A DNA stretch of 64,000 bases, from positions 12,710,001-12,774,000 of the forward strand of contig CM068746.1 in the NCBI GenBank assembly GCA_035084275.1, given 5' to 3'. Of this stretch, positions 4,666 to 40,016 are shown in pieces. This DNA comes from Hydrolagus colliei (lineage: Eukaryota). Every line of letters starts with the position of its first letter. Position 1 is the first letter of the stretch. The position numbers and the translations under genes were made by a program. The notes below the pieces were generated by a model. The model was not told where the DNA came from, did no database searches, and saw only the letters and a program-made list of their open reading frames with translations.

Positions 4666-5086
4666 CAAAAGGGTTGATAGGATATGCAATGACCTGCTGG
4701 TTATACTGGGTCAGCCAAGATTTATTAACTTTCCAGAGGAAATGTGATAGATATCTATTGAGGAATAAGTGGGTTAGGGTATTAGATTCCTAACATTCCT
4801 TCCTTCCCTAACATTCCTGCCTTCCCTAACCTGCCTTCTTCTGTGCTGTAAACGTCTATTCAGTGCAGGATGTCGAGTGGGATGAAATGTGGTCCATGAT
4901 AATTTTTGCAGTATAAAATGCACTAACACACTTTTTGTTTCCACCTCTGACAGGCTGAGTTCAATTTGTTTGGTTTGGTTTGAATTCTTGGCTTGTGAGG
5001 CTGCGTGTGTTCAGGAGCTTAAACTGAAGAGTGTGATTATTAATGGACCTGTTGTAATAATTCCTTTCTGAATCACTTCCCTCCAG

Positions 5087-5446
5087 CAAGTCAACTGGCT
5101 CATCAGACTTTGCAGCAGTTTTATGCTCTTACCACATTGAAAGGAGACAATGTGACATTGAGTAGTCTGTACCAAGAACCTTATTTAGAAAGGTTTACAG
5201 TGAAATGGTATTTCCTGTCTGATACCCTGAACTCCACCGAGAACATCGCAACATTATCATCTGAAAGTAGTTTGGTGAACAACTCTCACTATGCTGTCGG
5301 GCACGCTGTCACGAATAAAAGATTTACTCTGCAAATCAAGGATGTTCAAGTCAGTGACAGGGGAGAGTATTACTGTAGGTTGTTGGTAACCCTACCACCT
5401 CCGACAGTTACGAAAATGGGAACAAGAACGAGGCTGAATGTGACCG
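5087..5446 (+). CDS. Exon: Ig V domain with J-like G strand
   Basis: ttccctccag acceptor, phase 1-1. Encodes VTLSSLY...VKWY...FTLQIKDVQVSDRGEYYC...KMGTRTRLNVT; donor gtaatt. Confidence 0.9.
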
Positions 5447-15427: not shown

Positions 15428-16154
15428 GGTTAGAGCATTAATCCATGACTATGTGGTACACTGGCTCCCTATCCCAGAGAGTACACCCGTATAAATTATA
15501 CATTAATTTATACATTAATACATTTATTTCAATGCTCAATAGTAATTGACATGAATTGTCTCCTAATAAATCAGGTCTTTCAGTCAAGCTGCTATTGGGG
15601 TCCTCCTGAAGCACATACATTGTAATCCCTCCAAAAACAATAATAAAAATTGTTCATTTTCAAACCACGACTGTTTGTGGGACACTGCTGTGTGCAATTT
15701 GCTGTCGATAAGATGTGAAAAGCGTTATATCAAATGCAAGGATTATTATTATTATGTATCCCATAGGGAACGGCGATGTATCGGTTTTTCGATTAAACCC
15801 GATATGATTTTCAGATCGTTATGCCGATATGGTGATTCTAAAAAAAACGTTATATCGAGAGATTCGATTTAAAAAATATACATCGTTATATTTTTAATAT
15901 CGTTCCTGGCAATATATCAATATTGTTGGTATTATCAGTGTAATGCGATCTTTTCCAGCTTACCTTGTCGCCGGCATTGCGACCTCCTAGACCTAGAGCA
16001 TGGAATGCGCGTACATTCGGTGCGCGCGCACAATTAACGGGCGCGCACATCCGATGCGCGCGCACACTTTACTGTGTATACTCGACGTGAGTCGTGGCAT
16101 CTTAACAAAGTCGCATCGCTGAAAATTGTAGTTTGAAAATTTACCTTTCTCATC

Positions 16155-16510
16155 ATGGGGAAAAGAAGCCCCGTATGGGACTACTTTGAAAACAATGCAA
16201 TCAGTAATGGTGTGTATAGATGTACAGTTTGCAAGGTCTTGGTTAAGACATCTGATTCGAGCACGAGCAACCTGCGACATCACATTAAGCAGCACCACCC
16301 CGCCCAGCACGCTGCCCTCAGAGCGAAATCATTGTCAACAACAGCAGGAAGTCGAACCAGCGCTTCGGAGAAAGCGACAGGTAGTGGGGCCAGTGCAGCT
16401 CAAACAATTTCTGCTTTATTTAAGAGGAGAACATTGTACCAGAGCGGGGACAAAAAGTGGCAAAGTATCACGAACGCTGTCACTTTTTGCATAGCAAAGG
16501 AGAGCTTGCC
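16155..16510 (+). pseudogene. hAT/ZBED1-like transposase N-terminus (BED zinc finger), internally deleted
   Basis: MGKRSPVWDYF...CTVCKVLVKTSDSSTSNLRHHIKQHHP...ITNAVTFCIAKESLPM; similarity is lost after this. Confidence 0.85.
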
Positions 16511-16814
16511 AATGGCGAAGGACATTAATTCAGACTTCAGACTACATAAAAATAAGTGGCATTTTGTGGCTGTAAGTGTTATTTTTGTGTGTGAGAGAGT
16601 TAGAAGCCAGATTATCACTGCTTCTATAATTATCACAGCAGTGATAATCTGGCTTCTAACTAACAGTCAGACTGTCTGTCTCTCTCTTTTCTATTGTAAT
16701 AGATCTCATTTACAAGTGGACATCACATGCTACTTTCAAGCAAGAAATGGAGGAGAATAAATCTCTAGATTTTGTTTTTGGTGTGTGTGTGTGTTCTATT
16801 TTGTGTTTAGAGAT

Positions 16815-17310
16815 GGAGGGAGAGAAGGAGAGGGGGAAAGTTGCGAGAGGAGGAGAGGGAGGGAGAGAATGAGAGGGGGAAAGGAGGAAGAGAAGGAGAG
16901 AGGGAAGGGAGGGAGGGAGGGAGAGAAGGAGATGGTGAAAGGAGGGAGAGAAGAAGTGAGGAGAGGGAGGGAGGGAGAGAAGGAGAGGGGGAAAGGAGGG
17001 AGAGAAGGAGAGAGGAAGAGAGGAGAGGGAGGGAGAGAAGGAGAGGGGGAAAGGAGGGAGAGAAGGAGCGAGGGGAAAGGAGGGAGAGAAGGAGAGAGGG
17101 GAGGGAGGGAGGGAGAGAAGGAGAGAGGGGAGAGAGGGACGGAGGGAGGGAGAGAGGGGAGGGAGGGAGAGACGGAGAGGGGGAAAGGAGGGAGAGGAGA
17201 CAGGGAGGAGGGGGAGGAGAAAGGGAGAGTGGAGGGGGAGGGAGAGAAGGAGAGGGGAAAGGAGGGAGAGAAGGAGAGAGGAGAGGAGGGAGAGAAGGAG
17301 AGGGGGAGGT
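16815..17310. repeat. GA-rich low-complexity tandem repeat inside the hAT element
   Basis: Recurrent gggagagaaggagagggg-type units; source of several spurious E/G/R- and P/S/L-rich ORFs. Confidence 0.95.
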
Positions 17311-17615
17311 AGAGAGCAAACAACATCGTATAATTCAACAGACCTTGACACCAACATTACAAACTTTCTGGACCTAGAGCACGCATTTCGAAATGTGCGT
17401 GCACCGCGACTGCGCGCGCATCGTCAGTGCGGACGCATCGTCAATGCGCGCGCACCGCGACTGAGCGCGCACCATGAATGCACGCGCACTTCGAATGCAC
17501 GCGCATGCGCAGTATAAAAACTCGATAGATCGGTTTAAGCAGGTATGAGCAAACCGATATATCCATATCCGGAAAAATCCCATATCGCCGTTCCCTAGTA
17601 TCCCATATCTCTGGA

Positions 17616-17940
17616 TTATTTAGCTATGGCAAGCCAGTCAAGCTTGCGTTGCACAATCTGAATCCTTTGTTTTATTTTATCAATCTTTCTCTCTGTTGTT
17701 TGATTGGTTATGGAGATCGTCTCATCTTCAAGATCTTTCAAGATGGCTTGCAGAATATTTGTCAGCCATTCCCTGTCATACTGCCCATAATCGGAGACCA
17801 GCTGGGTGACTTGTTTTTCAACCTGATCGACAAGATCTTCATCATCTGCAATCTTCACAATGATCTTCAAGTCGGTTCGAAGCTCTTTCACTCGCTGGAT
17901 TTTTCTCCGGCCATTTTCACTGAAATTGTTCCCACATAAA
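17616..17940 (-). CDS. Terminal exon: last LRR plus ~85-aa helical extension
   Basis: tttctcag acceptor, phase 2. Encodes LCGNNFSENGRRKIQRVKELRTDLKII...RKLDWLAIAK*. Confidence 0.85.
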
Positions 17941-20900
17941 CTGAGAAACACATTAAAAGGGACAGGCTTAAGAAATGAAAAGTCAACGGTGACCTTAGCT
18001 CCAATATAAGGCATAGATACTCAATGTGAAGTGTATTTGCTAGATTTACTGTTTGTGACAGGCAAAGTATGGAAATTAGAGGTCTACTTAACATTGCTTG
18101 ATGGTTGCTAATAATAAAGGAATAATTTAGTATAGTGCCTTTCATGTCAGGAGGAAGACCCAAAGAATATATATAGGATTTACAGTAAAAGCCTGTTTAT
18201 CCGGCACCCTTGGGACCGGCCAATACTGGTTAAAGTGCCTGCTGGATATTCGGGCGGCCTGCGGCCGAAAACCCAACACAAGAAAATTAAAATTATTTTA
18301 ACACACACCATACAGATCAGACTAAATAATAACAGATCATAGAATATTGTATGGGTACGTATTGTTAAAACTTCTCACCTTTACTGATTGAGGTTTACAG
18401 TCCAGCAATTCTTTTTTAAATGGAGGACTCCAAGCGGGTGATTTTAAAGTCACGCAACATTACTAGCGGCAAGCCGATAGCCCTAGACTCTACTAGCGGC
18501 AAACCGAAATACTGCGCGACAATGTGGGTTATCGGCTAGCGTTATCGGCTTGTCGTTAGGATGACTTTAAAGTCGCACTCCATTTTTTTCACCCACTTGG
18601 TGAGCTCCATTTTAAAAAGAATCACTGGACTATAAGCCTCAACCGCAGCATCATGGCTTCAAGTGCAGCATCTACCAGCAAAGGTGAAAAGCGCAAGAGA
18701 GTAGTTTTAACAATAAGTACCAATACAATATTGTTATTATGTTATTATTTATGCATTTACAAATGCTCACCGCTATTGTTCTGGATAAATTCCGGTTTAT
18801 CGAATGGGGACTTTTTTTTTGGCGTGACGGTTATATGGAAGTGCCGGTTCATCGAGTCAAGGATAAACGGGCTTCTACTGTACTGTGAAGTGGAGTGACT
18901 ATTTGTCGGCAAATGCAGCAGGCCATTTGAGTACACCAGCCTCCCAGACACAGCCAGGGAGTGAATGATCAATTTTATTTGGGAGATTCTTGGCCAGGAC
19001 ACAGGGAGAAACTGCTTTTCTTTTTTCAAATAGCCCAATGGGAATTTATCATTCACCAGAGCAGAGAGACCTTGGTTTAAGGTCTCATCTGAAGAATGGT
19101 ATCTCCGTAATACAACACACCCCAGCTCTGCATTGGAATGGTATCTTGAACACAAACCTTCTGACTCAGACGAGAGTACTATCAACTTCAGGCTGGCAAG
19201 CTTGCAATTATATCTGGGATTTCGCTAACATTTAGAAAATTGATTGCAGACTTACTGTAGTATTTCAAGAGTCTTGTTGTGCTTCAGACATGCGGGCATT
19301 GTCTCTAACACTTCATCTGTAATCCCGTTGTCATACAAATAAAGGATCTTCAGACTCTGGTTTATCTTAAGTGCTTTCAATATTATCTGAGCCCCGCTGG
19401 ATTGAAGGTTATTTGTTCCAATTCTATAAAGAATGAATGAACAAACAGGGATGATATAAACAACAAACAAACAAAACTTACATTTATATAGCGCCTTTCA
19501 CGTCGAGAGGACGTCCCAAGGCGCTGTACAGTCAGGTAGGACAAGAGCAGGGTGGGAAGGATCAGGGCAGGATGAAGAATAGTAGGAAAAGTAACTGTAT
19601 ATTAGTGGGCGAAACGTGGCAGCCAAATTGCGCACAGCAGTGTCCCACAATCAGTCACGGAAGTGGGACTAGGGGCAAAAGGGGGTAAAGAAGCAAAAGG
19701 GGAGGGGTCGAGGCAGGGGGAAGAAAAGCAGGACAGTCGACTGTATACTTGTGGGCGAAACGCGGCAGCCAAATTGCGCACAGCAGTGTCCCCACAAACA
19801 ATCGCGAAAATGGGGCCAGGGGAGAAAGGGGGAAAAGAGGGTAAGGGGGGAGAGGGAGGGAAAGGTGGGATGGGTTAGGGTTAGGGAGGAAGAGGGGGGG
19901 AGAAAGGGGGGTAAGGAAGAGAGGGAGGGAAAGATGGGTGGGGGCAAGATCAGGAAGAGGGAAGAGGGAGGGAAGGGGAAAAGGGAGGAGAGAAAGTGGG
20001 GAAAGGGAGTGAGGGAAGAAGAAGATGGGGGCAGGGGTGGGGGGGAATCAAACAACAATAATAAACAACAAAAGCAATAATATTAACAACAAAAACAGCA
20101 ACAAACAACAACCAACAATCGTCCAGCAACCACTCCTTGTCCTCGCCGTCCGCCAGGATGATCCCTGAGATGGCGGGAAAAAAGGGCCCAGTGTGGTGTC
20201 AGGCCCCAAAACCAACCGGCTCCTCAGTCAGTGAACCCGGGGACTCGGTGATGGCCCTGGCACCTCGGACATGGTGTGTCTGGCCGGCTCGCACAGCAGC
20301 AGCAGCAGCCCGATCGCCGGCTGGATCTCCCGCGACGAGATGATCCGTCGCTTGCAGCACCTGGGCGCTCTCCCCCTCGCGGAAGACGTGCGCCATCCGC
20401 TGCCAGAGGAAAGTGCCGAGGTCGCGGCCTTCCTAGGTCCTGTCGAGGGGCCACTCTTCGCACAGCCGGAGGAAGCGCCGACAGCGAATGGCCGCCATTC
20501 CCTCCGTGATACTCCCCGTCGTCCCAAAAAGATGGCTTCGTTAGCCGGCTGCCCATAGAGGAAGAACCGGCAGCGATGGAAGCCGGCTCCAGCTGGTGGG
20601 CTGAGCGGTGCATAGCGTGAAAGCTCTGTCCCCGCGATCGTTCCAGCCCGAAGATCTCTAGTCTCGGGAGCGGGTGGTCCCGTGTGAAAAAAAATATCAC
20701 TATATATCTAATATCACTATTAGATAAAATAGATGATATAAACTATCATCTATCGCCAGGGAGGTGGGCGAGGTGGAGAGAGTGCAGGTGCAGGTGCTAT
20801 CCTGCACTCTCTCCACCTCACAGCCATCTTGATTTAGAGGGTATTCGACCGGGAGAGTTGAAAAGAGTAATGGGATTGGGGAAAGCTAAGCAAAGTCAAA

Positions 20901-23900
20901 GTGGGAAGGCATGGTAGCCTTTTTTAAAAAAAATTGGTATCTTTCAGAATTTTCCCTTCGTAATTCATAGACATATTGCAAAAGTATTTAGAAACTTACG
21001 ATAATTTTTCAAGAGGACAACTTGATTCTTGAAGAATGTTGCTGATTATCCTGGCGGACTTTACACTCAGCTTGTTGGAACTTACTCTGTAAAATGGAGA
21101 TTAAGAACACTTGAGTAAGTCTGTATTAAATTACCATTTAAAATCACAGGATTATCAAGAGATTTGGTTGAATACTGATATTCCTATTTGTAACATCAAA
21201 CTGATTCTGATATGAGGACATGGCAAAAACCACTATTCCTGGTAACACATCCCAATTGTTGGTTATCCAGTTTTCATTTTGCTGTCTGTCCTTAACTTGT
21301 CCTCCCATAGAGCATAGTCACAAATTGATTGAGTAAACAGCAATAATTTCTGTTTATATAGCGCCACTTATGGAGAGTGGAATCACAGAGCGCTTGACAG
21401 TGGTGGAGCACCTCACTGACCTCAGGTGATAAACTCTTTCTGATATGACAGCCTGTTCTTCATTCTAATCTAATGCATATACATTATCTCACACTGATGT
21501 TTCAATGGAAACCCAAAGAGAACTATTCCATTACCCATGGAGAACGTAATAGCATTACTTACAAGATAGATTTACATTTGGAAATTACTTCCTCGAGTTG
21601 CTGAATGCCTTCATCCTTCAAGTCGCAAAGTCTTAAGTCCATTTCTTGCATGTGGGAATGACTGAGACAATAGCACAGCGCTGCAATGTCCAGGGGGCTC
21701 AGAGAAATGTTGCAAAAGTTTATGCTTGTAATGTGAGGAGACACTTCTTCTGTCACTTTATTATCGTGCAGTTCGAAAAGGCAATGGATTAAATTTAGTT
21801 GCTCAGAATGCTTGATACCTGATTGATACCAGTCTGTAAACCACACGATCAGCGCTTGATAAGTAGAATCACTGAGGGGAGCTGAAGACTTCCAGAGGTT
21901 TCCATCTCGTCCTGCCGTTAAGAAGCCCATGAACATTTTGGTGAAACTGAAGAGTTTCTTCTTGAGCTCAGGCCACTTGACTGCTTCAATACACAACAGG
22001 CTCTTTGGGTTCTGTGGCTTCTTTCCCAGACACCACAGATCCAGGCATTCGATCAGCTCTTCGGGTTTGTCCTTCAGTAAGTCTGCACAATACCAGGCTG
22101 CTATCTGCTCCATCAGTATAGGATGATAGAACTCAAAGCTGCTCTGATTGTCCCATTTCTTTTCCAAGATGAGATTGGACAAGTCACTGAAAAGAAATGT
22201 TGGCCTTATATCAAATTCAATAAGATCTTTCTCTTCCATGTTGTGTTTGCCTGACAAGAGATGATGATAGGAAAGCTTCCCCACTTTTAGGATGGTCGTA
22301 ACAATTTTTTCATGGGGTCTAACCTCACATTTCTCAATATCAGTCACTGACAGTTTGTGTGACTGTGCAGTGCCTGGAGAACCATGACTAAAGAGGCTGT
22401 TAAAGAACAGAGTGAAGAGTTTGCTCTGAGTTATTGGCACAGCTGTTATCTTTTCAGAGTCATGATTGCACATCTTGAGAGCATTGCACAGCATATAGCT
22501 GTTTAAGGGATTGGAGGCCAGGTATGTGATGGTCTCTTTCTCAGTAAAATGTTGATACATTTTGCTTGCTGTTTCCTTATCTTGATAGAACACATCGCAG
22601 TATTGTCGTAGCTGATCAGTAGTAAACCCAGAAATTGCCAGGATGCAATCAAAATATTTCTTGTTTGTTTCTACCTGATCATTATTCCACCGGGAGGTCA
22701 CCAATACGGTTGCAGTAGGAAGCAGTTGCCCAGAAATCAGATTGGACACAAGAACACCGACATTAGCCTCAGTGTCTATGTTGATATGCTTCAATGGAGC
22801 CTTACAATCGATTTGATAGTAGAACTCATCCAGGCCATCCAAAATGATCAACACATCATGGCGATCAAAGAGGAGTTCATTCAGGACTTCTGATAGTGGA
22901 GAGCACTTGCTCTGAAGCAGTTTCCTTAGGGTTGTCTCTTCTTCAACCTTATTTAAATCATGGAATCGTAAAATAATGATGCACTTGAAAGGTTGATTGT
23001 TTGATTCAGATGCCCATTCTTGCCTCATGTAGGTAACTGTCCAGCTCTTGCCCACGCCTGCATCTCCAATCATGAAGATACGTTTTGAAGAGGAATTTTC
23101 TCCCACAGCCATGGAGAGCATTTTAATTGGTTCGATTTCTTTTCTATTATCTGAACCACCTTCATTAATCCCCTCAATAGGTTTTCCTTCCTTCTTTGGG
23201 TAACTGACATTCACTGTCCTCATAAGAGACCTGTAACATTCGGCCATTTTACCACTGATCATATCAGGATACTTTTCTATAAGGCACTGTTTGTAGACTT
23301 GAAGAGCATCTGAAGAGGAAAGAACTAATATTTTATTTTGTGGCTCTTGTATTTTCTGAGCATTTCAGAGTTATGTGCAATTTGGACAATTTTTAAATTC
23401 AATCTTAATTTATAAACTGATTTTCTATAGATTTTTGCGTGAACAATGCATTTAAAAATTGATATTGGATGCTCTGAATTGCTAAGAAAATAGAATAAAT
23501 CTAGAACCAGATGGAATTTCTTCCCTCTGGTCTTCATTTGACCAAAATATTTTGTTATTCCCCAAACCAACATCCTAGAGATTCTCGGAGGCTGCGCCTT
23601 TTAACAACAACAACAGAATTACATTTGTGGGGACTCAAAATATTAAAGAGGTAGGAGGGGGCAGGGCCATGGAGGGCCTTGAAGTTAAGGACAAGTATCT
23701 TGAATTCGATGCTCAGAGGAAAGCGGAGCCAGTGGAGCTGGGCAAGGGTTGGGATGATGGGGTTGCGGAGCCTGGTGTGGGTGCGGTCTGAGGGGTGAGG
23801 CAGTGACGGAGATGGCTGATGTTGCGGAGGTGGTGGAAGGTGGTGCTGGTCATGGCATGGATATGGGGGTAAAAGAATAGCTCAGGGTCAAACAAGATAT

Positions 23901-26900
23901 CCAACTTCCTGACAGGCTTGGTGAGGTGAAGTGTGCATCCGTGGATGCTGATGCTGCCGGCACCTGAGGTGCGGAGGAGCTGGCATGAGTGAATCAGGAT
24001 GGTCTTGGTTTTGCTGATGTTCAGCTGTAGAATGTTTTCTTTCATCCAGGATTTGATGTCTGACAAGGTGGTCTGTCAGTACAGCAGTAGTCCTGGAATT
24101 GAGGGTGGAGGCAGCGAGGTAGAGTTGGGTGTCATCCGCATACATGTGAAAATTTACCGCATGTCTGCGGATGATGCCACCGAGGGGGAGCATGTAGAGG
24201 TACAAGAGGAGGGGAACAAGAGGACAGAGACACGAGAAGGTGAGTTGGCTGGAAAATAAACCATTGATAGAGGCAAAGTGGAGATGGTGCAAGAAGTAGG
24301 ACCTGAACCATTCAAGGACAGAACCTTGAAGGTTGAGGTGAGAGGAGAGGAGGTGAAGGAGGATTAAGTGGTCGAAAGTGTTGACGATGGCAGAGAGATC
24401 GATGAGGATTAGGAGCATTAGTCACAGATGAACAGGATGTAATTTGTGACTTTAACCGGAGCAGTTTCCATGCTGTGAGCAGCAATGAAACCTGATTGAA
24501 GAGGTTCATGGAGGGAGTGGGAGGAGAGGAAAGAGCGAAGCTGCGAAGCAAGAACTCTTTCAAGGACCTTGGAAAGAAAGGGTAGGTTGGAGATGGGCTG
24601 GTAATTGGAGAGCAGGGATGTGTCCAGGGAAAGTTTCTTGAGGATGGGGGTTATTGTGGTTATTGAGGTGGGTGGAAAGGGTACCGGATTAAAGGGAGAG
24701 ATTGATGGTGTCGGAGATTAGGAGGGCGAGGAGATGGAGCTGGGAGGTAAGCAGAAGCGTGGGAATAGGGTCAAGGGAGCAGGTGATGGGCTTCCTGGAG
24801 GATATAGTGTTATGACAGAGGAGGGGAGACAAGTTGGAAAGGAGTTGAAGGAGATGAAGTGGTGATCAGAGATGACCTTGTTGGTGATGACATCCAAGAC
24901 ACCGAGGCCCCGGGTGATCACCTGGTTGAGTGGATGTAGATGGAGAGGTTGAGAAAGAAGGGGAGGGAGGAGACCGAGGAGATAGAGCAAGAGGGGGTGA
25001 AGTGAAAGTTGAGGATGAGGAGGTGATTGGAACAGAGGCAGCGGGAAGAGATATTGGAGATGAAGGTGGGGGAGGTTTTTGCGGGGCGATAAACAGGGAG
25101 AATTTTGAAAGGAAAATTAGAGAGGTGGCAGAGAGAAAGGTGCTCAAATGAGGGGAGTGAGCCAGAAGAGTAGGGGGATAGAGCGAGCGATGTTCTGGAG
25201 ATGATAGTAACACCACTGCCATGGCAGTTGGAGGTGGGTTGATGAGAGGTATAGCCGGGTGTGTGGTCTCAGTGATGGTTTAGGTATCGCCTAGGGTAAT
25301 TCCGGTTTCAGTGAGGGCCACATGTCGGTGTTTTCGTCAAGGATGAGGTTGTGGATGGTCAGAGCCTTGTTGCAGAGGAGGCAGACATTTTGAAGGCCGG
25401 TGCGGAGGGAACGGTTTCCATGGGAACATGAGAAATGAAGGGTTGATGGAGTGGTTCGCAGAGAGGGTGGGGATATGAGTGAGAGAGGACAGGTTAGCCC
25501 CCGGAGTCTGGATCCGGCCGGGCTTGCAGCGGAAGTGGGGCATGGGGCAGCCAGTGTGGCTGATTCTGGACAGCCAATGCTGAGAACCATGGTGAGCCTG
25601 GAGGAGGATTCCCAGACTGGAGCAGAGGGAGGCAGTGGAAGGGTCAAGTGGGGATAGGAGGCGAGGAGGACAGAGAGATAGGAGGACAGAGCGATAGGAG
25701 GACAGAGCAAGAGAGTTGCAGGGAGGGGAGCATTTTGAAGGGGACGGTAGCTCAGGTCGGAGGCAGCAGCCAAAATGCGCAAGCCAAGGCAGCAGTCAGC
25801 CCACAGACCTGAAGGGGCTAGAGGTAGTACAGAGGGGAGAGGGGAGAGGGGGCAGGGCATTCAGTGTGATTATCCACCTGGTTACCCAACCTGGAAGATA
25901 GCACTGAACACCCTGCATGGAGAGTGCAGAAGAAGGGAAGGAGACACAGTGAGCTATACAATACCTGGTACCAGGAATTCAAACCTGGCTGGTGGAACTG
26001 AGGCACAGAGATGTTTGGGCGGGAAAATCTAAAATGGCTCTCCCTGAAGCCGGTAAAAACCAGCACACGTGACCCGTGTCCCCCTCTAGGTACCAGCCAG
26101 CCCGAACCCCAGCCCTGCCTCTAGCTATCTGCCAGTTCAGATCCTGAGAACCCTGCCCTGCCTCTATCTACCTGCTGGTCCCGAACCCCAAAACCCAGCC
26201 TTGCCTCTATTCAACCTGCCGATAGTCCTTAAGGTAGGTTCTGGCTATGTTATTTGCTCTTGTTGAGTTGTGGTGGTTGATTCAGTGGTTTTACCTTTAC
26301 GAGACTTATACGTCCTCCCAGCATCTTGGGACACCCATCTGAGGCTGTTGTTGTTATTGTAAATCGTATAATGGCCTGAGATGTACATCCAGCCGAGCAC
26401 CATTGAGTTTTCTATCAAAACTACTTCATTTCATTGCACTAGTCAAATTAATCATCTCCTAACTCATAAATGGTCCCCTATCCTCCATTACTCTGCTAGC
26501 CTCCATTACTCCTGCACTTACCGTCTGCAGTGTAGATTAATGATTAAATCAGTTGGATACAATTTATACAAGTTTGCCTGCCACGCGGACATTGCGTAAG
26601 TCATATTAAATGCTATGTTCCCGACTGATACAATTATGAGAGTTTTTCTGTATTTAATTGCAAATAAAGCCCCTGACCTTATGCTCCCGCCCAACCACAC
26701 TTGTCTAACCTTATATAGTGTATGCACATGCTGCATCCCACAGCATTGAATGGATAACATCAACATCAACAGCAACAAAATTACATTTCTAGAGCGCCTT
26801 TTACGTTGGAAGAACGTCCCAAGGCCCTGAACAGTCAGGTCGGGACCCGAGCAAGCGGTGGGGGGGCAGGCTAGGGGAGAGGGGAGGGAGAGAGTTGGGA

Positions 26901-29900
26901 GGGGCAGGAGAGATTTAGGAGGGGACAGAGATGGGAGTGCAGCAAAAGGCATGATTGAACAAGAAGGTCTTGAGACCGGCCTTGAAGGAGGTGAGGGAGG
27001 GAGCGAGGCGAAGGGACTGTGGGATGGAGTTCCAGAGTGTGAGGGCAGAGAGGCTGAAAGCCCATTCACTGATGATAGGACGGGTCGGGCGGGGTACACC
27101 TGGCAATAATGCATTAAGTTAGCAAACATTATACATTTTAAAGGCATTCAAAGGGAGGAGCAGAAGCCTAGGGCAGTAATAATTGAGGCAGAAACCAAGG
27201 TGAAGGTGGAAAGCAACAATTGCATTTGATGATACTCGGTGCACAATTCTACAGTAACACAGTCCCAAATCCAAACTGCAGCAACCAGGCAAGTTTAGTT
27301 TGGTTTTCTATTCCTGGGGGAAAACGGGCATCTTTTATTATAATTAGTTGCAGATATTGTCCTGGAATTAATACAGCAATCACTAATCTCAGCTCATTAC
27401 CTGCCATGGTTATGATGCTCATCAAAGTCACTTCTGGAAAAACAAAATACAATATACAAATCAATTAGTGGCGGTTTGTTTTGGTGAACAAACAAGTGAG
27501 GGCAAGTGATATTAGATTGAGTTTGTGCGCAATTGGCTGCCGTGTTTCACCCACAAAATATCCAGTCAATTCACTTTACAGTGTATTCTGTGAAGTGCTT
27601 TAAGAGTCTCGAAGACGTATAATGCGCTATATCAACTGCATTAGTTATTTAGAACTTCCCCAAATGAAATGATTGTGTATGTGTGGTGGGGGTGGGGAGA
27701 GAGAGCAAGGGAATCCAAAAATAGTAGAGATCTCTAAGGGGGGAGCCAGCAGCATAGATATGATGGGCTAATTTCTGCGCTGAAATTTCTATGAAAGTCA
27801 GAGACATAATCAAATAACAATAGCAACTGAGATCAAAATCGAGAAGAATATGGAAAGCAGTAGGAATTGCGGCTGATTTTCTCCTCTTTTCCCAAACCAG
27901 ACTAACTGTAGACCAGAATGGATAACTCAGCATAGACCAATACTGAAATCTAAAAGAGAGGGCAAGTTTGATGGATTGGGGAGAGTTTAAAAGATTCAGG
28001 GCGTAGTGGCTGAAAGTGCAGCTGCTGATGGAGGAGGCAGCAGATGGGGGGAATCTGCGATAGTGTGGTGGTGTGACAAAGTTTAGGGTGGGTGATCGAG
28101 TACTTGTTGATCATATTCAAACTTACTCTCAGGATCCAAATAAAGCTGCTTTTTCATTATTGATTTTCTGAAGACAATCCCCATCCCGATCCCAAACACC
28201 ATAATGGCACCAAATGCTGCAGCAATTCCCAATCTAGTTCTTCTGATATGTAACGCTGAAATCCGATCTTCAGGGTTGTTGATTTCATTGACTTGTGAAG
28301 TATCTGTATTTGGAAGTTTGAATTAACTATAAATCAATGACAGCACGTTTTCTTCCTAAAAGCAGTACCTTGCTTTCCACAATGCAGGTTGTATAAATCA
28401 ATAATCAGCTGAGGAAACGTGTATCTTTTGTAGCATCAAAAGTTTACTTGCACAAGCCTTTTCAACATTCTGTGTTAGAGAGGGCCTCAGATGTGCGAAG
28501 CAGTTGTTTGCAGTTAATTTGTGAGGCTGTTGGCTCCAGGAATGTCAGAAATTACCTGAAAAACCAGCACCTGGCAACACTTAATATTAAGTTCATTTAG
28601 GCTGAAGTCTGTACTTCCACTGTTTTCCGGAGTGGCCGGATAGTGTCTGGACCTGTGTGGGTCCAGAGATGCCTTGCCATTACTATAAAAACAATTAATT
28701 ATTAATTGAACAAGATCACAGGAGAGGTTCATGTGAAGAAAGCGCTTCAAACCATTTGACCTCAGCTTTGTGGAGTCCTGTAGCTCAGTGGTTAGAGTAC
28801 TTGCCTTGCAAGCGAAATATCTAGTTTCAATTTCAGTCAGGGCAAAACCTTGGGCAAGTTTCCTTCCTCTACAGGCCTGATAATAATAACCCCTCAAAAA
28901 AGAAACTACTGTAATTTGGTCACTTCATCCACAATTGTTTGTGGGCTGCTGCTGCATTTCGCCCATAAATATAGTCAATTCAGTTTACAGGATATTCTGT
29001 GAAGTGCTTTGAGACGTCTAGAAGATATGAAAAGTGCTATATCAAATGCAAGGATTATTATTACAGTATTATTAAACTTCCTGACTTGTGATTGCACAGA
29101 TGTGGTGACTACGTGACATGCACTGTGGTACAATTGCTAAATGTCTGGTTTTGTCATACAGAAATATTGACACTGACTTCCTGTGCTGCATCCTGCTGAC
29201 TTACAAGCCACAGAAACCAGAACAGAATCTCTCCAGCATCTGACTTGGGGAGAGCTTGATGCGAATGCAATCTTGGGAGACAAGGCCAACAGTCTTATGG
29301 AATGCTAGCCTGTGGTTTATCTTGATAGCTTGAGAGGGGTCCACTCAATGTGACCTAATGCTTGTGTTTGTTACAGAGAAGCAGAGTATTTGGTTCTGCC
29401 CAACACAGCCCTGTGACTCTGGGTATAATGGGACTAACAATGATTCAATAGCTAACTATATATATATTTATATATATATATTTATAAAACTGTGTATATA
29501 TATGTACACATATATAAATCTCGTAATGTCATAACCAATAGCCCTCCAGCTAACTTAGTCAATCATCTCATGACTGTGTAGGATCATACTGTGCACAAAA
29601 TGGCTGCCACAATTCCCCACAGAAATTACTACACATGACAGTCATTACTGTGACGCACTTAGTGACATATTAGCATGATAGACATAAATTGTTTAAGATA
29701 CTTCTATAAATTGCAAGTTTGTCTTCCAACTAGCCTTGTTTGTAAGGATATGTGTCCTCTCTGACTTGCATGTGTTATGTCTGTATTACGGAGATAATTC
29801 TGTCTTGGGTATTTTACTGCTAATGTACTGGTTCTCTGAAATGGTCACTCTGTACAGTGTGATTCACACATGTGCATCTACATACTACCCACTTATCTTA

Positions 29901-32527
29901 CATCTCATATTTCTTGAATTATTCGCAGAATGTGTTCTGATGTGTTGGACTGGAATTATATTTGTATAGCGTCTTCAAATTTTATCTGTTCTTCCTCAAT
30001 TCTCTACTTCCTCATTTACAGCTGTAATGTGGTAATATTCCACCTCAGTCTAGGTTTAATTTATTGACAAAACTTCTCAGAGTATCTAGAATTGATTAAT
30101 TCAGTCTTAACTTTGGTGCTTTTTCTCGTAGTTCTTAAAAACCCTTTCTATTGTATGACACAACCTTCCTCCCTGTCACATGGAGCAAAAATTCGCATTC
30201 TTGCAAATAACTCACTGGAAACCTACAAAAGGGAATATACCCACTGATTATGTAGGTGCACAAACTACAGCAAATGGCAGACATCTACTCCCAACCCACA
30301 CCGACCCCACCAAAAAAATCAGAATTTTTCAGAGCCTTTTAGTGTTTGCTCCTCTTGACCAGCTCTAGATCCCCAGCCCACCCCACCATCGAGGGTTGGG
30401 CCTTCAGCCTATCTGCTGCCACTCTTTGAAACTCCCTCCCATGGTCCATTTGCCTCGCTCACTCGCTTGATTCCTTGAAGGTTCGTCTCAATACCCTCCT
30501 ATTACTGTTTTTGCTACAAGAATTCTAAATACCTACCAAGTACTTTGAGTTCTACCACAATTTGGACATGATCATAATCATCATGTTGAATGACGTAACA
30601 TGTGTATTTCCCATTATCTGATAAAATCAGCGTCTTCAGCTGAAGAGAAGCATTTCCATTTAGCATAACGCTGGGGAGTAGCTGTGTTCTTCCTCTGAAT
30701 AACTGGTTCTGATACTCTGGATGGTCAACATTATTGTAGAAACTGTGAACAACTGTATCGTCCTCTGTCCTCTGCCAGGTGATGACCAGTTTCTCAGGTT
30801 CGAGATAGGATTCTGGTGTAAAGAGACAGGGTAGCAACACATCTCTGCCGACGACTCCAGATATCATATACAAAGACACCTCCCCTAAAAGAGTTACAAG
30901 TTGATATAGTTAATTACAAAGCTAGAATCATATTTAGTTTACAGCAGTGAAAGATGACATCCACCCACCATGTTTTTGCTCTCCATTGAAGCTGTATTGT
31001 AATAGATGCATAGGAGTAGGAGGAAGCCATTCAGCCCCTCAAGGCCTGTTTCATCATTCTATATGATCATGGCTGATCTGTACCTCAACTCCAATTAACC
31101 CGCTTTTGACCCATATTTCTTGATACCCTTACCTAACAAATATCTATCCACCTCAGTCTTGAGGATGTGAATGGATCCAGCCATAATCAACAACCTTTTG
31201 AGGGAGGAAGAGTTCCAGATTCCCACTAACCTTTGGGTGAAAAATTGCCCAAGAGGAAATCCCATTAATTATTAAGAAATACTGCTATTTAATTACCAAG
31301 TATATTTAAATAGATGTATACTTGGTGTATATTGTTGTAGTTTGGGATTGATATTACAGCAATACAGCTATTCCTACTATACATCATAGCTTAATTACTT
31401 TTACATTCTGGAAAGCACTTTGAGATGACTCAACAACATGTTAAGGCGCTCTATCAAATGCAAGGATTACTATTATTGGTGTTTACTTCCGTATCACGGT
31501 GAATGAAACATTAGTTCCTAATCATGGAACCTAGAATTCCCATAATCACTGGATACTCAGCCGTTAAAGTATTAACTTGCAATTATCAAAACAGAAGGTA
31601 TTTTTCAGATTTGTAACCCCTTATAGAACTGTACTGCAGGGAAATAGGCTGTTTGGCCAAATTAATCCATGCCGATGTACATTCTATATCAATCTCTCAC
31701 TACTCCTTATCCCCTGGCACACCCTTCTGTTCCTTTCTCCCTTATGTGTGTATCTAGCTTCCTCTTCAATGCATTTGTACCATCTGCTTCTACCACTGTT
31801 CATAACTACCATAGTTATACATCTATGCTTCTGTGACTTTTTTTAAAAAGTTGCCATTTTTATTAATCTCACTTTCCCCATATTCCTTAAAATTTACTCC
31901 ACTTACCCCATTCCATAGAATCCATGATTCTATCGGGTTGGCCTGAATAGCTTGTAACTAATCTCACACCCCAAAATCTCTCTCGGTGAAGAAATTCCTT
32001 GTAACTTCTCCCCTGATTTCTCTGTTAACAATCCTGAGACTGTAATCACTAGTCAGTGATTCTTCAACTAAAGGAAATATTTTTCCTATTTATTTTGTCT
32101 TGTTTCATAATTTTAAACAACTCTATTAAATCCTCTCTCAACCTCCTCTGGTCCAATGAGAAAGCTTCAGTTTAATGAGCCTCTCATTATACGTATAGTG
32201 TTCCATATGATCCTGTAAATCTATGCCGCATCCTACACGTCTTCATAATATTCTTCCTGGGATGCTTAAAACTGAACTTGGAGCTTGTAAATACATATGC
32301 TCACCATTCTATGGACAAAACTACATGGAAAATGTTGATTAATGTACTGTTTGGATGGATTTTACTGGTGAAGCATTGATAACAATTATTAACAGTGACA
32401 TGTCTCTGGCTTGCCAGGATATGGCCAGTCAATTAAATAAATAGAAATGGGATATCACACAGACAGACCCACAGTATTAAGGAGCACACTCACCAAACAA
32501 AGGGAACATCAATACTGTGAGTAACAT
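17616..32527 (-). CDS. Predicted type I membrane Ig-NLR receptor: signal peptide - B7-type IgV - TM - NACHT - LRR - helical tail (~961 aa)
   Basis: Exons 32527-32494, 30884-30537, 28303-28127, [optional 27433-27401], 23309-21563, 21086-21000, 19423-19256, 17940-17616. All junctions are GT-AG with matching phases (1,1,1,2,2,2); 2886 nt = 962 codons including the stop. The TM-to-NACHT junction is inferred. Confidence 0.72.
18183..18880 (+). mobile_element. TcMar-Tigger/pogo-like MITE in the last intron of the NLR gene
   Basis: TA-flanked TIRs cagtaaaagcctgtttatcc / ggataaacgggcttctactg. Retains the transposase start MASSAASTSKGEKRKRVVLTI and an internal inverted repeat (~18388-18430 vs ~18604-18645). 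Confidence 0.85.
19256..19423 (-). CDS. LRR exon (two 28-aa RI-type repeats)
   Basis: 168 nt, phase 2-2: IGTNNLQSSGAQIILKALKINQSLKILYLYDNGITDEVLETMPACLKHNKTLEIL. Confidence 0.92.
21000..21086 (-). CDS. LRR exon (one 29-aa repeat)
   Basis: 87 nt, ttttacag acceptor, gtaagt donor, phase 2-2: VSSNKLSVKSARIISNILQESSCPLEKL. Confidence 0.9.
21563..23309 (-). CDS. NACHT exon (NLRC3/NLRP-like): pre-NACHT helix, NBD, HD1, WHD, HD2, first LRRs
   Basis: Walker A GDAGVGKS, Walker B LIILDGLDEF, sensor-1 LVTSR, WHD FEFYH, LNLIHCLFEL. Strong acceptor ttctttcctcttcag in phase 1; the frame is open upstream of the listed Met; donor gtaagt in phase 2. Confidence 0.95.
23603..26240 (-). mobile_element. Long degenerate L2 LINE in the intron before the NACHT exon
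   Basis: Endonuclease-like (LQNVCLLCNKALTIHNLILDEN) and RT ([11 protein letters not shown]) fragments, (TTG)n 3' tail, tandem repeats at ~26090-26220. Confidence 0.9.
28127..28303 (-). CDS. Stalk + transmembrane + juxtamembrane exon
   Basis: ccaaatacag acceptor, gtaagt donor, 177 nt, phase 1-1: DTSQVNEINNPEDRISALHIRRTR-LGIAAAFGAIMVFGIGMGIVF-RKSIMKKQLYLDPE. Not present in the supplied ORF track. Confidence 0.88.
30537..30884 (-). CDS. IgV exon of B7/butyrophilin type (HHLA2/CD276-like)
   Basis: 348 nt, phase 1-1: DVLLPCLF...VITWQR...VVHSFY...FRGRTQL...GNASLQL...SDNGKYTCYV; both canonical Cys and the Trp are present. Confidence 0.93.
32494..32527 (-). CDS. Leader exon (signal peptide)
   Basis: Exon 32562-32494 with ttttctacag acceptor and gtgagt donor. 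ATG at 32527 gives MLLTVLMFPLF+G in phase 1, continuing GEVSLYMISG. Confidence 0.78.
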
Positions 32528-33025
32528 TTTGTTTAAAGGAAATTCCTTCTTTCTTGGGAGTTCTGTAGAAAAGAGGATGAAAAGGGGTTACTAGTATACA
32601 ATGGCTAAATCTGATTTTCATCAAAGAAAATTATGAATATGATGCAGTCAGTGAGTGTGGAATCACACAGCAGTTCTGAAACATACTTGCAGGATGAGCT
32701 GAAGAATCTGAAACAGTAAATCATTACCAATAAATGATGATGGGGATATAAATCTTGATCTGGTCTTGAATTTTTTGATGCAAGGATTATTAATACTATA
32801 TTCACACTATGTTTTGTAGTAACTTAGGTCTAGCAGCCAATCAATGTTTTGAAGAAAGCAATGTTTCACACAAACCTTGTAACAGGAAACCAATGTCAGT
32901 TGAACTTTCTGATACAAACTACCCACAATAACTATCAGCTCTTTGTCTAAACCCACAGTTTGTTTACAACTAGTAGACTGTATGGTGGGCACTCACATTA
33001 GCTGTTGAACACCCTCACATGTATA

Positions 33026-36276: not shown

Positions 36277-37560
36277 TTCAACAACAACAACTTTGATTTA
36301 TGTAGCGCCCTCCATGCCGGACGGCGTCTCAGAGCGCTTCACAATAAAGGATCCCGGGCCTGAGCCAGGGGGAGGGGGGAAAAGGTGACCGAAGGCGCGG
36401 TCGAAAAGAAAGGTCTTCAGCTGAGACCTGAAACTAGGAAGAGAGGGGGCGAGGTGAAGGGAGTGAGCAAGGGAATTCAGAGCCTCGGGGCGTAGTGGCT
36501 TAAGGTACTGCTGCCGTTAGTGGAGCGGAGGATTTGGGGGACACGTAGGAGGCCAGACCCGGTGGAGTGAAGGCAACGAGTGAAGGTGCTGTGTTGGGAA
36601 GAAAGGAGGTCAGAGAGGTAGTGGGGTGCAGGGAACTGGAGAAATTTGAAAACAAGAGTGAGCATCTTGAAATTGATCCTCTCCAGGACAGGGAGCCAGT
36701 GAAGTCTGGCAAGGACTGGGGTAATGGGGGAGCAAAGCGTGATGCGGGTGAGAACGCAGACGGCAGAGTTCTGAATGAGCTGGATTTTATGGATTGTGGT
36801 GGAGGGGAGATCGGCGAGGAGGGCATTGGAATAGTCCAGCCGAGAGGTGACAAAGGCATGGACCGCGGTGAGTTTCAGCGGCGTTTGGGGCAAGGTATTG
36901 CCAGAGACGGGCAATACATTGCAGGTGGAAAAAAGCAGTGTTGGTGAGGGACCGGATGTGGGGGAGGAAGGACAGTTGGGGGTTGAACCTGATGTCAAGG
37001 ATGCGTACCGGTTTGGAGAGTTTCAGGGTCAGGTCGGGTAGATGGAGCAGGTGAGAGCCGTGTGACTGAAGACAATGACGAGAGCCAAAGAGTATGGTTT
37101 CCGTCTTATCGACATTCAGCTGCAGGAAATTTGCGCTCATCCAGCTCCTGATGTCTGACAAGCAGGCCGTTAGAACATCAGGGGACTGGGGGTCGCAAAG
37201 TGAGGTGGAAAAATACAGTTAGATGTCATCAGCATACATGTGGAAGTGTGCCCCATGACTGTAGATGTCTGCAAGAGGGAGCATGTAGATGAGGAAGAGG
37301 AGGGGGCCAAGGATGGATCCTTGGGGTACCCCACAGGTAACCAGGTGAGAGTGGGAGGAAAGCCATTTGTGGTGATGCATTGCTGGCTGTTTGTGAGATA
37401 CAACTCGAACCAGGCGAGTGCGGTCCCACTGAAATGAATGACGGAGGATAGGCGGTGGAGGAGGATGGTGTGGTTGACAGTGTTGAACTCGGCTGAGAGG
37501 TCCAGGAGAATATTCCCCCCACCCCACACCCACTGCTTATTTTCCCTCCTCCCCTGGAGG
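36277..37560 (-). mobile_element. L2 LINE, second subfamily tail
   Basis: GVPQGSILGPLLFLIYM, HMYADDI and [11 protein letters not shown] motifs; tail ...ctgagacgccgtccggcatggagggcgctac...(TTG)n. Confidence 0.92.
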
Positions 37561-40016
37561 CAGTAATTCATGCTGAGTTTAGGTTCAGCAGACACGGATC
37601 ATCAGCGAATATATCATCCAAATGGCTATTCTTTATGCCCAATCCCAGTGTGTTCAGACTACACTGAATCTAAGCACTCTGAGACGCCATCCGGCGTGGA
37701 GGGCGCTATATAAATTGTTTTAGCGCCTTGGGACGTCCTCCCGACGTGAAAGGCGCTATATAAATGTAAATTGTTGTTGTTGTTGTTGTTGTTGAATCAT
37801 AAAACACGGAGCATCTCTGCGTATGAACATTTTGCTGGAATAATAAGAAGAGTTGTTCCCCCTTCCACTAACCTGAGAAATTGAGGATAATTTAATTCTT
37901 TCTCACTGTCACTGTAGCCTGATTAAACTGATTCACCACCAGTCGAGAATCAAGCCTAGGGATTTGTGTGTCTGGTCTTCAAAGGATTTGAACAGTAACT
38001 TGAATTGCACTGCAAATTGATCGGGGAAGTGACGTTTGAAGACACCAATGTGTGGACATCTTATTTTGTGGTCAGCCAGGTAACTGACACATGCAGAAAC
38101 CCATTACCGTTGCTTAAGAGTCTCCAAATCAAGCTGTGAATTCCTTGCATTCCACCTACACATGGAAATCCCAGAGAGTGATTGTTGGAATAGAATGCTC
38201 TCTCTCTCCCTTCTTAGAGGGACTTCTGGAAAGTATTAGGTGCGGGTTGGCAAGAGCCAGGGCTTAGGGATCCTAGAGTGTGCGATATGGTAACTGCTGG
38301 TGTCTCAGTGAAAGATATTTGGTATTTGTCTTTTTGTATTCATTTTCCACCGTTGGATTTTTCTTTTTTGGGGGAGCAAAAATACACAGTGTGTACTGCA
38401 CATATAGTCTCACTGTTAATGATCAGCCTCTGTGCCTCTTAAAACTGAGTGAACTGAATTACCTACTGGCTTTGTGCTGTGTAATTAAGATGATGATGTA
38501 AGATCATTACAGTAAATGTGATGAGTTATGATGAGGTTGGTATTTGGAATATTTATTGTTGAAGTTTTAGTGTAATAAATAAGCCTTCTCTTATAATATG
38601 GCATCAAATTTCCAGCAATAATCATTCTCCTAACTCCTTATGTTGGGAATGATAATAATCCTTGTTTTCAATGTAGCAACTTTAAAATCAGGTAGACGTC
38701 TCAAAGCATTTTCCATGTTCTAATGAAGGGTCGTGGACCTGAAATGTTGACTCAATTTTCCTTTCTCCATGGATTATTATTATTGTTATTATTATAGATG
38801 CTGCCTGACCTGCGGAGTGTTCCCAGCGATTTCTCTTTTTGTTTCAGATTTCTGCAGTATTTTGCATATTTTCCTTTGGTTTAGATGATTCCTTTCTCAG
38901 TTTCCGTTTCTCATTCTCTTTGGCAGAAGAGATTTCTTGAAATGTAAGGATAATTGAAAGTGGAAATGTGTTGCCCACAATGATCACCCCTTCCGCTCAG
39001 CAGGCTCTGCCCTGCTCCACGTCCCCTGACCCACCCGCCCCACCATTGGCGGGCGAGCCTTCAGCCACTCTGCCCCCAACCTCTGGAACTCCATCTCGCA
39101 GTCCCTCCGCCTCGCCCCCTCCCTTGCCTCCTTCAAGTCTCATCTCAAGACTCTTCGATGGACACATCGGCAACTTCTAATCACCCCCTTCCCTCCCCCC
39201 ACCCACCCCCAATGTCCTCAGCTCGGGTCTAAAGCAATGACTGTCCAGCGCCTTGGGAGGTCCTCCTAATGTGAAAGGCACTATACAAGTGTAATTTTGT
39301 TGTTTTGGATTCAAGACACTGTACATTTCGTGTAACTCAAAGGGCTTTACATCTATCAGAAGTTCTAACCTTCCTTGTGAATTACTCTCGGTTTTGAATT
39401 ATTTACCACTTTCCTGGAAATAAGGGTTTCGTTATAAAGCCGTCAATACATTGTGTCAGGAATGTTATTCACACGCATCAAAATAACAATGTCTTTGAAT
39501 TTATGAACGAGATGATTTAATCTTCACAGTAATTGACAATTTTTTATGCATTCATTTAAATTGCTTTAACATGTGACATACGCCATGTTTCGCCCACGAG
39601 ATAGACAGTCAATGTACTTTGCAGTATATTTTGTGAAGCACTTTGAGATGTTTTGAAGACGTGATATGATGCAAGATCAACTGCCAAGGATTATTAATAT
39701 ATGAAATGCACAATATGAGTATATTGCAAACTGCAGTCGTTTTTTTTCAGCAAAAAGAAAACAGACATTGCTACTGGCCAAGAGACTAGAAATATTCATT
39801 TGAACTAAACTAGAGAGTTTGGGGTTAATTTTTTACTTAAAACGTTAGCAAACAGTTTGTGACAATGGCATTTTTAATTGTCTTAGCGTTTAGCAATTTG
39901 TTCTGTAAATTTGGTTGACATTTGAGAGGAAGGTGTCTCAGGTGACAGCAGAAGATTGACACTCCTCTCATTCCTCTATCCATTCCATCTATCCAGGCTC
40001 TGTCTCGTTCAATTAA

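Follow-up and report, generated by a model that had tools for sequence, protein, structure and literature searches.

The characterised NLRs of vertebrates are soluble cytosolic sensors with an N-terminal CARD, PYD or BIR domain, and all NLRs follow one logic: sensing by the C-terminal repeats, oligomerisation by the NACHT domain and clustering of the N-terminal module, which occupies the effector slot. In fish NLR-C proteins, FISNA stands directly before NACHT, many members end in a C-terminal B30.2 domain, and the family shows large lineage-specific expansions. The IgV domains of the B7 family are surface ligands, and B7 ligands carry an IgC domain beside the IgV domain. An Ig domain and a NACHT domain occur together in Apostichopus japonicus, where AjNLRC4 was experimentally shown to be a membrane pattern recognition receptor with Ig, transmembrane (TM) and NACHT parts (PMC8699970, PMC13133943), while the anthozoan NLRs of Nematostella and Acropora have a NACHT-LRR architecture and are predicted to be membrane-bound via N-terminal TM segments (PMC3879445). 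Here we describe a gene of the chimaera Hydrolagus colliei, located in a window of 64,000 nt of contig CM068746.1 that is free of any N and to which all coordinates refer, whose predicted product joins a B7-like IgV domain through one TM helix to a NACHT-LRR switch, and which we call Ig-NLR. An earlier note made from the letters of this DNA knew of no characterised vertebrate protein with both parts, and our search agrees with it: no description of a vertebrate Ig-NLR was found in the full-text literature, a coverage that mostly leaves out subscription journals, and a survey of whale-shark NLRs makes no mention of the family.

Splice sites were located by string search and the coding sequence was then rebuilt on the minus strand. 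The resulting coding model comprises eight exons (32527..17616) in one in-frame open reading frame (ORF), with AG at all acceptors, GT at all donors and entry phases, from exon 2 (E2) on, of 1, 1, 1 (the micro-exon E3b), 1, 2, 2 and 2. The order of leader, IgV, TM and NACHT/LRR exons on one strand with canonical splice sites, as well as the possible in-frame join of the TM and NACHT exons in phase 1, had already been proposed in the earlier note, and both were borne out: joining E3 straight to E4 (28127 to 23309) reproduces its 961 aa protein letter for letter (...LYLDPE-NALQVYKQC...). What the 961 aa form lacks is a micro-exon of 33 nt (E3b, 27401..27433; KVTLMSIITMA, phase 1-1, canonical ag/gt), which the earlier note had treated as optional and the inclusion of which yields 972 aa. 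Its orthologue is an annotated exon of Callorhinchus milii (locus L003 16322-16354, RAALIRYPNMA) with ag/gt kept, present in both RefSeq X1 and X2. With the micro-exon, the split codon encodes Asp instead of Asn, which restores the family-wide motif DA[IL]xxYK. Because of the annotated Callorhinchus exon and the restored Asp, the 972 aa form is the better model and is the one preferred here.

In the 972 aa model, the product consists of a leader, the IgV domain, a stalk of ~25 aa, the TM helix, a basic cluster, a linker of ~100 aa, NACHT-WHD-HD2, about six ribonuclease inhibitor (RI)-type LRRs and a three-helix tail. Pfam matches on the 961 aa protein were V-set (1.5e-10), NACHT (1e-20), NOD2_WH, NLRC4_HD2 and LRR_6, and there was no Pfam match to CARD, PYD, BIR, FISNA (PF14484) or SPRY in the protein. 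Of the features that define an NLR, it therefore has the NACHT domain, the WHD/HD2 with its His and the RI-type LRRs, and lacks the N-terminal death-fold or BIR domain and, by its predicted TM helix, the soluble location.

With isoform X2 of Callorhinchus, the 972 aa model can be aligned over its whole length at 75% identity, with 7 gap positions and all exon junctions matched, which excludes a chance arrangement of its parts. Furthermore, the collinearity of the window and the Callorhinchus locus continues across the introns (72-86% nucleotide identity), and the gene is therefore an orthologue in another holocephalan. Judged by these alignments, 32527-17616 on the minus strand is one intact gene, orthologous to C. 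milii ‘NLRC3-like’ (accession numbers XP_007907325/XP_042191490). A second copy in the window was not found by tblastn, and Ig-NLR has one or two loci per species. The loci of S. canicula and Ascaphus show the same exon layout.

A search for the architecture, which the earlier note had suggested as a check, did retrieve further members. Among 5.8 billion proteins searched with the model, with the Pfam content of the matches precomputed, full-length relatives with V-set, NACHT, NLRC4_HD2 and LRR at 97-100% query coverage came from ~25 species of Holocephali, sharks, batoids and amphibians. Identity to the model was 75% in Callorhinchus, 44-51% in ~15 sharks and rays and 29-33% in salamanders and basal frogs (Lissotriton, Pleurodeles, Pelobates, Ascaphus, Discoglossus, Bombina), whereas the coelacanth contributed fragmentary models only, which were added by profile search. 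Family members scored at least 534 bits, against at most 331 bits for proteins outside it, the next best being teleost NLRC3 and NLR-C. Because of this large gap, Ig-NLR is not orthologous to any named mammalian NLR. When query residues 1-262 were used alone, only V-set+NACHT proteins were retrieved, with no new lineages and no IgV-only relatives within the allowed length range. The gene models have been in RefSeq since ~2014 under misleading names (‘NLRC3-like’, ‘NLRP1 homolog’, ‘NOD1-like’).

Several members depart from the common layout. Latimeria chalumnae XP_014348506 (P0060) is a chimeric model that runs from the HD-LRR-tail of one Ig-NLR copy into the IgV-TM of the next, an indication that copies stand in tandem in the coelacanth genome. 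One paralogue of Pleurodeles waltl (P0022) has two tandem IgV domains and likewise no IgC, Amblyraja radiata harbours a second locus on a different chromosome (P0157), and the frog proteins fall into two clades.

Evidence for the complete architecture is also given by assembled transcripts. The Logan contigs L001 (3341 nt, skate-like, ORF 267-3215) and L002 (3675 nt, newt-like, ORF 134-3160) each contain the entire leader-IgV-TM-NACHT-LRR-tail ORF unbroken, together with untranslated regions (UTRs) and in-frame stops upstream of the ATG. Since the genes occupy 11-53 kb on the chromosomes of Callorhinchus, catshark and Ascaphus, with separate exons for leader, stalk/TM and NACHT mapped among the three (and for IgV in Callorhinchus and Ascaphus, not in catshark), both contigs must, by their structure, derive from spliced mRNA. 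Four further newt-like contigs of 3.3-4.4 kb belong to the same 90% cluster; the six contigs encode 982-1008 aa, i.e. near full length, with IgV, TM and NACHT confirmed in L001 and L002. The cDNA-derived Callorhinchus protein V9KLB9 is 3' partial, and the junction lies outside its span.

The phylogenetic relationship was estimated by a quick maximum-likelihood tree with support from the Shimodaira-Hasegawa-like approximate likelihood ratio test (SH-aLRT) and with teleost NLRC3 and NLR-C as the only outgroups. Ig-NLR formed a family with 100% SH-aLRT support whose internal branching is that of the species tree: within the Chondrichthyes, the Holocephali (window and Callorhinchus) are sister to sharks and batoids, and within the Sarcopterygii the coelacanth groups with the amphibians, with a duplication in frogs. 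As the tree follows the species tree, the fusion of IgV and NACHT is older than the split between cartilaginous and bony vertebrates, and the gene appears to be ~450 million years old. On this tree, Ig-NLR is a low-copy family inherited vertically since the jawed-vertebrate ancestor. Teleost, Xenopus and amniote members were absent among the matches, a result that is provisional given how the searches select candidates; the family appears to have been lost in teleosts and amniotes and to have survived in cartilaginous fish, coelacanth and amphibians.

In the comparison of the window with Callorhinchus, at a synonymous divergence (dS) of 0.31, the ratio of non-synonymous to synonymous rates (dN/dS) was 0.43 overall; with domain boundaries in 961 aa numbering placed on the 972 aa model, an offset of 11 aa that makes all per-domain values approximate and the row ‘juxtamembrane+E3b’ unreliable, it was 0.32 for the IgV domain, 0.28 for the nucleotide-binding domain (NBD), 0.31 for the LRRs and a relaxed ~0.9 for stalk and TM. 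With the same boundaries, identity between chondrichthyan and amphibian proteins came to 42-45% for the IgV domain, 44-45% for the LRRs, 33-34% for the NBD and 8-15% for TM and stalk. By these estimates, both the IgV and the NACHT half are under purifying selection, and the conservation of IgV and LRR above that of the NBD gives a hint of conserved partners on either side of the membrane. The central claim of the earlier note, i.e. one gene encoding IgV, TM and NACHT-LRR, is thus upheld by ~25 species, two unbroken transcript contigs, the collinearity with Callorhinchus and purifying selection.

Leader, IgV domain, stalk and TM are encoded by three exons. Exon 1 (E1, 32494..32562) has its acceptor after 32563, a 5' UTR at 32562-32528 and the ATG at 32527; its coding part of 34 nt (32527-32494) specifies the leader MLLTVLMFPLF(G), whose N-terminus is hydrophobic (mean Kyte-Doolittle value 1.84), and ends in phase 1. 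Exon 2 (E2, 30537..30884, 348 nt, phase 1-1) encodes the IgV domain (V-set in Pfam, 1.5e-10). Among PDB sequences it is most similar to CD276/B7-H3 (per-domain E 2.6e-12) and next to VTCN1, MOG, BTN3A and PD-L1, in line with the B7 type assigned to it before. The landmarks of the fold are Cys31 (30828-30826), Trp48, the sequon N89-A-S (30654-30646) and D101xGxYxC107 with Cys107 (30600-30598); C31, W48, N89, D101, G103 and C107 are invariant in 21 family members. The same is true of G88-N89, with the N-x-S/T sequon at N89 kept in most members, and each of the 21 has at least one N-glycosylation sequon in its ectodomain.

Exon 3 (E3, 28127..28303, 177 nt, phase 1-1) encodes the stalk, the TM helix GIAAAFGAIMVFGIGMGIVF (28229-28170, mean Kyte-Doolittle value 2.33 over 19 aa) and the basic stop-transfer sequence RKSIMKK. 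One hydrophobic segment of 19 residues (mean Kyte-Doolittle value 1.7-3.4) followed by K/R lies between IgV and NACHT in 21/21 proteins, and their summed net charge is +54 in the 15 residues after the TM versus +1 before it. The protein is therefore probably a type I membrane protein, with the IgV domain, its disulfide and its N-glycan site on the outside or in a lumen and the STAND switch on the cytosolic side, directly under the membrane. AlphaFold2 (AF2) models were made of the full Callorhinchus orthologue and of the last exon of the window gene. The orthologue was modelled with a mean predicted local distance difference test score (pLDDT) of 73.5, i.e. 77-89 for most of the IgV domain (10-residue block means), mostly 70-97 for NACHT-LRR and 85-97 for the LRRs.

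In the cytosolic part, exon 4 (E4, 21563..23309, 1747 nt) encodes the juxtamembrane linker, the NACHT NBD, HD1, WHD, HD2 and the first LRR. One RI-type LRR follows on exon 5 (E5, 21000..21086, 29 aa, phase 2-2) and two on exon 6 (E6, 19256..19423, 56 aa, phase 2-2), while exon 7 (E7, 17616..17940) contains the last LRR, the three-helix tail (17831-17619) and the TAA stop (17618-17616). That the NACHT-LRR part is intact, as the earlier reading had it, is evident from Walker A (GDAGVGKS, 23067-23044), Walker B (LIILDGLDE, 22851-22825), sensor-1 (TSR, 22698-22690) and the FxxxH motif of the WHD, present as FEFYH (22137-22123) and then ..MEQIAAWYCA. The family as a whole conserves Walker A, Walker B and sensor-1; G279, G282, G284, K285, S286, D355 and D358 are invariant in the 21 members, and H593 is nearly so. 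The cytosolic part matches NOD2, NLRP9 and NLRP3 among PDB sequences, and its LRRs match those of RI and NLRs. In addition, the best fold match of the orthologue model was ADP-bound NOD2 (E 1e-29), with NLRP3 also matched, and its LRRs show the alternation of strand and helix.

The model of E7 (pLDDT 80.5) has four helices, one belonging to the LRR and three to the tail. The tail fold had no PDB match (best E ~1), a weak resemblance to a C-terminal fragment of NLRX1 (3un9) being a lead only, and no homologues outside the family were found with phmmer against 1.84 billion representatives, which returned two family members only. The tail is not a death fold. Predicted isoforms (P0007, P0009, P0172, P0174, P0156, P0159, P0180) skip the TM exon or IgV and TM, lose only the IgV domain through an alternative first exon, or lack the tail.

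The gap of 4.8 kb between the TM and NACHT exons, which contains the micro-exon, is only ~57% long interspersed nuclear element (LINE) sequence. The earlier note had called it mostly L2, an identity that could not be confirmed. A lineage-specific LINE-like insertion (23604..26357, minus strand; weak RVT_1 matches, motif YADDTQLY), intronic and outside the gene product, measures ~2.75 kb in the window versus ~100 bp in Callorhinchus, whose intron from micro-exon to NACHT is 1.29 kb. As noted before for CARD, PYD and death domains, no death-fold or other domain was detected by Pfam in the 10 longest gene-strand ORFs (at least 90 aa) in or overlapping the gap, nor was an alternative 5' exon seen in the window when intron ORFs were compared with Pfam. 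Since the gap contains the micro-exon and the insertion, and the Callorhinchus intron is so short, little space is left for a hidden effector exon.

We give a probability of roughly 0.4 to the reading that Ig-NLR is an ancestral jawed-vertebrate receptor which joins, in one chain and with either direction of signalling, a B7-H3-like surface domain to a NOD-like ATPase switch. As to the direction, we lean tentatively, at somewhat less than even odds, towards inside-out signalling. The butyrophilin BTN3A1 signals in this way, its B7-like ectodomain reporting on an intracellular sensor. In Ig-NLR, the C-terminal LRRs and tail would hold the ADP-bound NACHT domain closed until a conserved cytosolic cue is sensed. 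NACHT would then swap its nucleotide and form a ring oligomer beneath the membrane, by which the N-terminal module would be clustered, here the TM helix and the B7-like IgV domain in place of a CARD or PYD. The output would be a multivalent B7-type surface signal towards a conserved receptor on neighbouring leukocytes, parallel to the relay from intracellular B30.2 sensing to the B7-like ectodomain in BTN3A1. This direction is favoured because the LRRs and the autoinhibition apparatus are kept and highly conserved, because the N-terminal effector slot holds TM and IgV, because BTN3A1 provides a precedent, and because AjNLRC4, the one characterised Ig-TM-NACHT receptor that works outside-in, has no LRR (PMC8699970).

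Conversely, signals may pass from outside to inside, a direction that is physically plausible and to which we give somewhat lower odds. A ligand, i.e. a self counter-receptor, a homophilic contact or a microbe, would cluster the IgV domains and release the tethered NACHTs, whose oligomer would signal via the LRR/tail or partners. There are precedents for both steps: the Ig domain of AjNLRC4 binds Vibrio and its intracellular domain drives actin-dependent phagocytosis (PMC8699970; PMC13133943), and NLRP3 tethered to a membrane or clustered on a scaffold is activated by clustering alone (PMC12117088). The conserved, family-specific tail could moreover be the missing cytosolic effector. However, the complete LRR and WHD autoinhibition apparatus is conserved, which a pure clustering receptor would not need and which has no LRR counterpart in AjNLRC4; an output domain of the death-fold, TIR or kinase type is lacking; and the IgV domain is under purifying rather than diversifying selection (dN/dS 0.32), which makes a variable pathogen ligand unlikely.

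Less probable still is a role of leader, IgV and TM as an anchor only, which would position a regulatory NLR on the plasma membrane, the endoplasmic reticulum (ER)/Golgi or the endosome/phagosome, with the IgV domain sorting or stabilising the protein and without any transfer of information across the membrane. Comparable cases of membrane-located NLRs are NLRX1 at mitochondria and NLRP3 at the trans-Golgi network, and NLRC3 and NLRX1 are regulatory NLRs without an effector domain, as is the case for the cytosolic part here. Indeed, several NLRs work at membranes (PMC12117088), and the poor conservation of TM and stalk (8-15% between chondrichthyans and amphibians, dN/dS ~0.9) is what a passive tether would show. 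On the other hand, IgV and LRR are the most conserved domains (42-45% over ~450 million years) and the B7-H3-like face is kept, which is hard to explain for a sorting tag.

It is very doubtful that the main product is a soluble NLR, generated by exon skipping or an alternative first exon, with the IgV-TM form being minor or tissue-restricted. All N-terminal coding exons are of phase 1-1, hence any skip preserves the frame, and predicted isoforms do lack the TM exon (Stegostoma X2, Ascaphus X7), IgV and TM (Ascaphus X9/X11) or, via an alternative first exon, the IgV domain only (Pristiophorus X2). The TM-skipped forms, however, retain the signal peptide, which would put NACHT into the ER lumen, and therefore look like by-products; furthermore, all six transcript contigs are near full length (982-1008 aa; two checked for IgV, TM and NACHT), and every lineage has kept the IgV and TM exons, which are under constraint. 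That two adjacent genes, one for IgV-TM and one for an NLR, were fused on paper by the earlier note and by read-through annotation is hardly credible: automated pipelines do fuse neighbours, as in the Latimeria chimera, and the join in the window species itself is a predicted one, yet the ORFs are unbroken on transcript contigs of two distant lineages with stops upstream, the identical join was predicted independently in ~25 species, the IgV-TM part lacks both its own stop codon and its own cytoplasmic-tail exon, the NACHT exon begins in phase 1 without an in-frame ATG, the Callorhinchus intron concerned is only 1.29 kb and residues 1-262 retrieve V-set+NACHT proteins only.

Several observations weigh against the one-chain receptor that we prefer. 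The leader in the window has only 12 aa and no charged n-region, versus 20-25 aa in the orthologues; the Callorhinchus Met (M-EFPLNK, L003 10301), with which isoform X2 begins (MEFPLNK...) at the equivalent position, is a Lys in the window, where the ATG lies seven codons downstream and no in-frame ATG is present further upstream of 32527. The predicted TM rests on hydropathy and charge, with a pLDDT below 50 for stalk and TM in the orthologue model, and the membrane-proximal IgC domain is absent, there being a single Ig domain between leader and TM. That L001 and L002 stem from RNA is judged from their unbroken ORFs. For every species, the localisation, the topology, an ATPase activity and the oligomerisation are predictions from sequence. 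Finally, isoforms that skip the TM exon, or both IgV and TM, are predicted, and the tail, for which neither a fold nor a homologue is recognisable, might act as a cytosolic effector itself, which would favour the outside-in direction.

Other features of the window complete the picture of the locus. Upstream of E1, the 3' part of a putative non-coding first exon (32728..32770, minus strand, donor after 32728, ttg|gtaatg) aligns with exon 1 of the Callorhinchus RefSeq model; by this homology it would be 5' UTR, as it lacks an ATG and has stops in frame. On the minus strand, degenerate fragments of LINE reverse transcriptase with YADDTQLY and weak RVT_1 matches occur at 835-2209, 23604-26357 and 36480-37600, and long CT-rich simple repeats (TCTCCCTCC-like) at 16800-17420, just 3' of the stop, and at 19600-20100, in the intron between E5 and E6. 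Tail-to-tail with Ig-NLR lies an immunoglobulin superfamily gene on the plus strand (5044-9800), with a V-set exon at 5044-5472 (Pfam 8.9e-10), a C1-set exon at 6414-6797 (2.5e-10) and a TM-like segment near 9758. The first canonical Cys of its V domain is replaced by Ser (‘VTLSS’), the V domain ends J-like (‘GTRTRLNV’), and among PDB entries it matches antibody chains, SIRP and shark UrIg2 best. The gene is absent from the 10 kb flank of the Callorhinchus locus, and it was rejected as the donor of the IgV exon, with which it shares only 23% identity. Past the Ig-NLR stop, at a distance of 0.9 kb, the plus strand contains an ORF with a BED zinc finger (16137-16757, Pfam 2.3e-08), which could be a gene (ZBED or hAT-derived) or what remains of a transposon.

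If confirmed, Ig-NLR would add both an unrecognised NLR subfamily and an unrecognised member of the B7 family to the ancestral immune toolkit of jawed vertebrates, and would physically link the B7/butyrophilin and NLR systems. Cells under infection or stress could convert cytosolic NLR sensing into a clustered surface signal of the co-stimulatory type, or a contact signal into an NLR oligomer. Whether a STAND oligomerisation switch can pass information across a membrane would thereby become testable, with Pleurodeles, catshark and skate as tractable species. The names currently in use conceal the architecture. These prospects are tempered by the invertebrate precedents, by the gene models being publicly annotated already and by a function that is still a prediction, and with no amniote member among the matches there is no direct bearing on human biology.

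Compared with known systems, Ig-NLR shares with NLRs of the NOD2/NLRC3/NLRP3 type the NACHT domain with Walker A and B, the WHD His, HD2 and the C-terminal RI-type LRRs. Unlike these, it has a signal peptide, IgV and TM at its N-terminus in place of CARD, PYD, BIR or FISNA, only about six LRRs and an additional three-helix tail. From fish NLR-C it differs by having neither FISNA nor SPRY and by its 1-2 loci per species, without expansion. In the anthozoan TM-NLRs, a gap-junction-like domain contributes three to four TM helices, and both an Ig domain and the layout of signal peptide plus single pass are absent. AjNLRC4 and AjNLR-new, by their published description, combine in one chain an Ig domain outside the cell, a membrane anchor and a NACHT domain inside it. 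AjNLRC4, however, is described with two TM segments and no LRR or CARD, binds microbes and acts via actin, in contrast to the one TM and the LRRs of Ig-NLR. Since no echinoderm or cnidarian protein was among the homologues in the search with the model, which did not address homology directly, an independent origin of the echinoderm and vertebrate Ig-TM-NACHT receptors is likely. With the B7 family and butyrophilins (CD276, VTCN1, MOG, BTN3A1, PD-L1), Ig-NLR shares the pattern L.WQ..VVHSF...GRT.L....GNASL.L..V...D.G.Y.C.V, and the phase 1-1 Ig exon, and its layout is probably type I like theirs; it differs from them by having no membrane-proximal IgC domain and by an intracellular NACHT-LRR instead of a short tail or B30.2. 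Like the butyrophilins, it would link a B7-like ectodomain via one TM to an intracellular domain of the sensor type.

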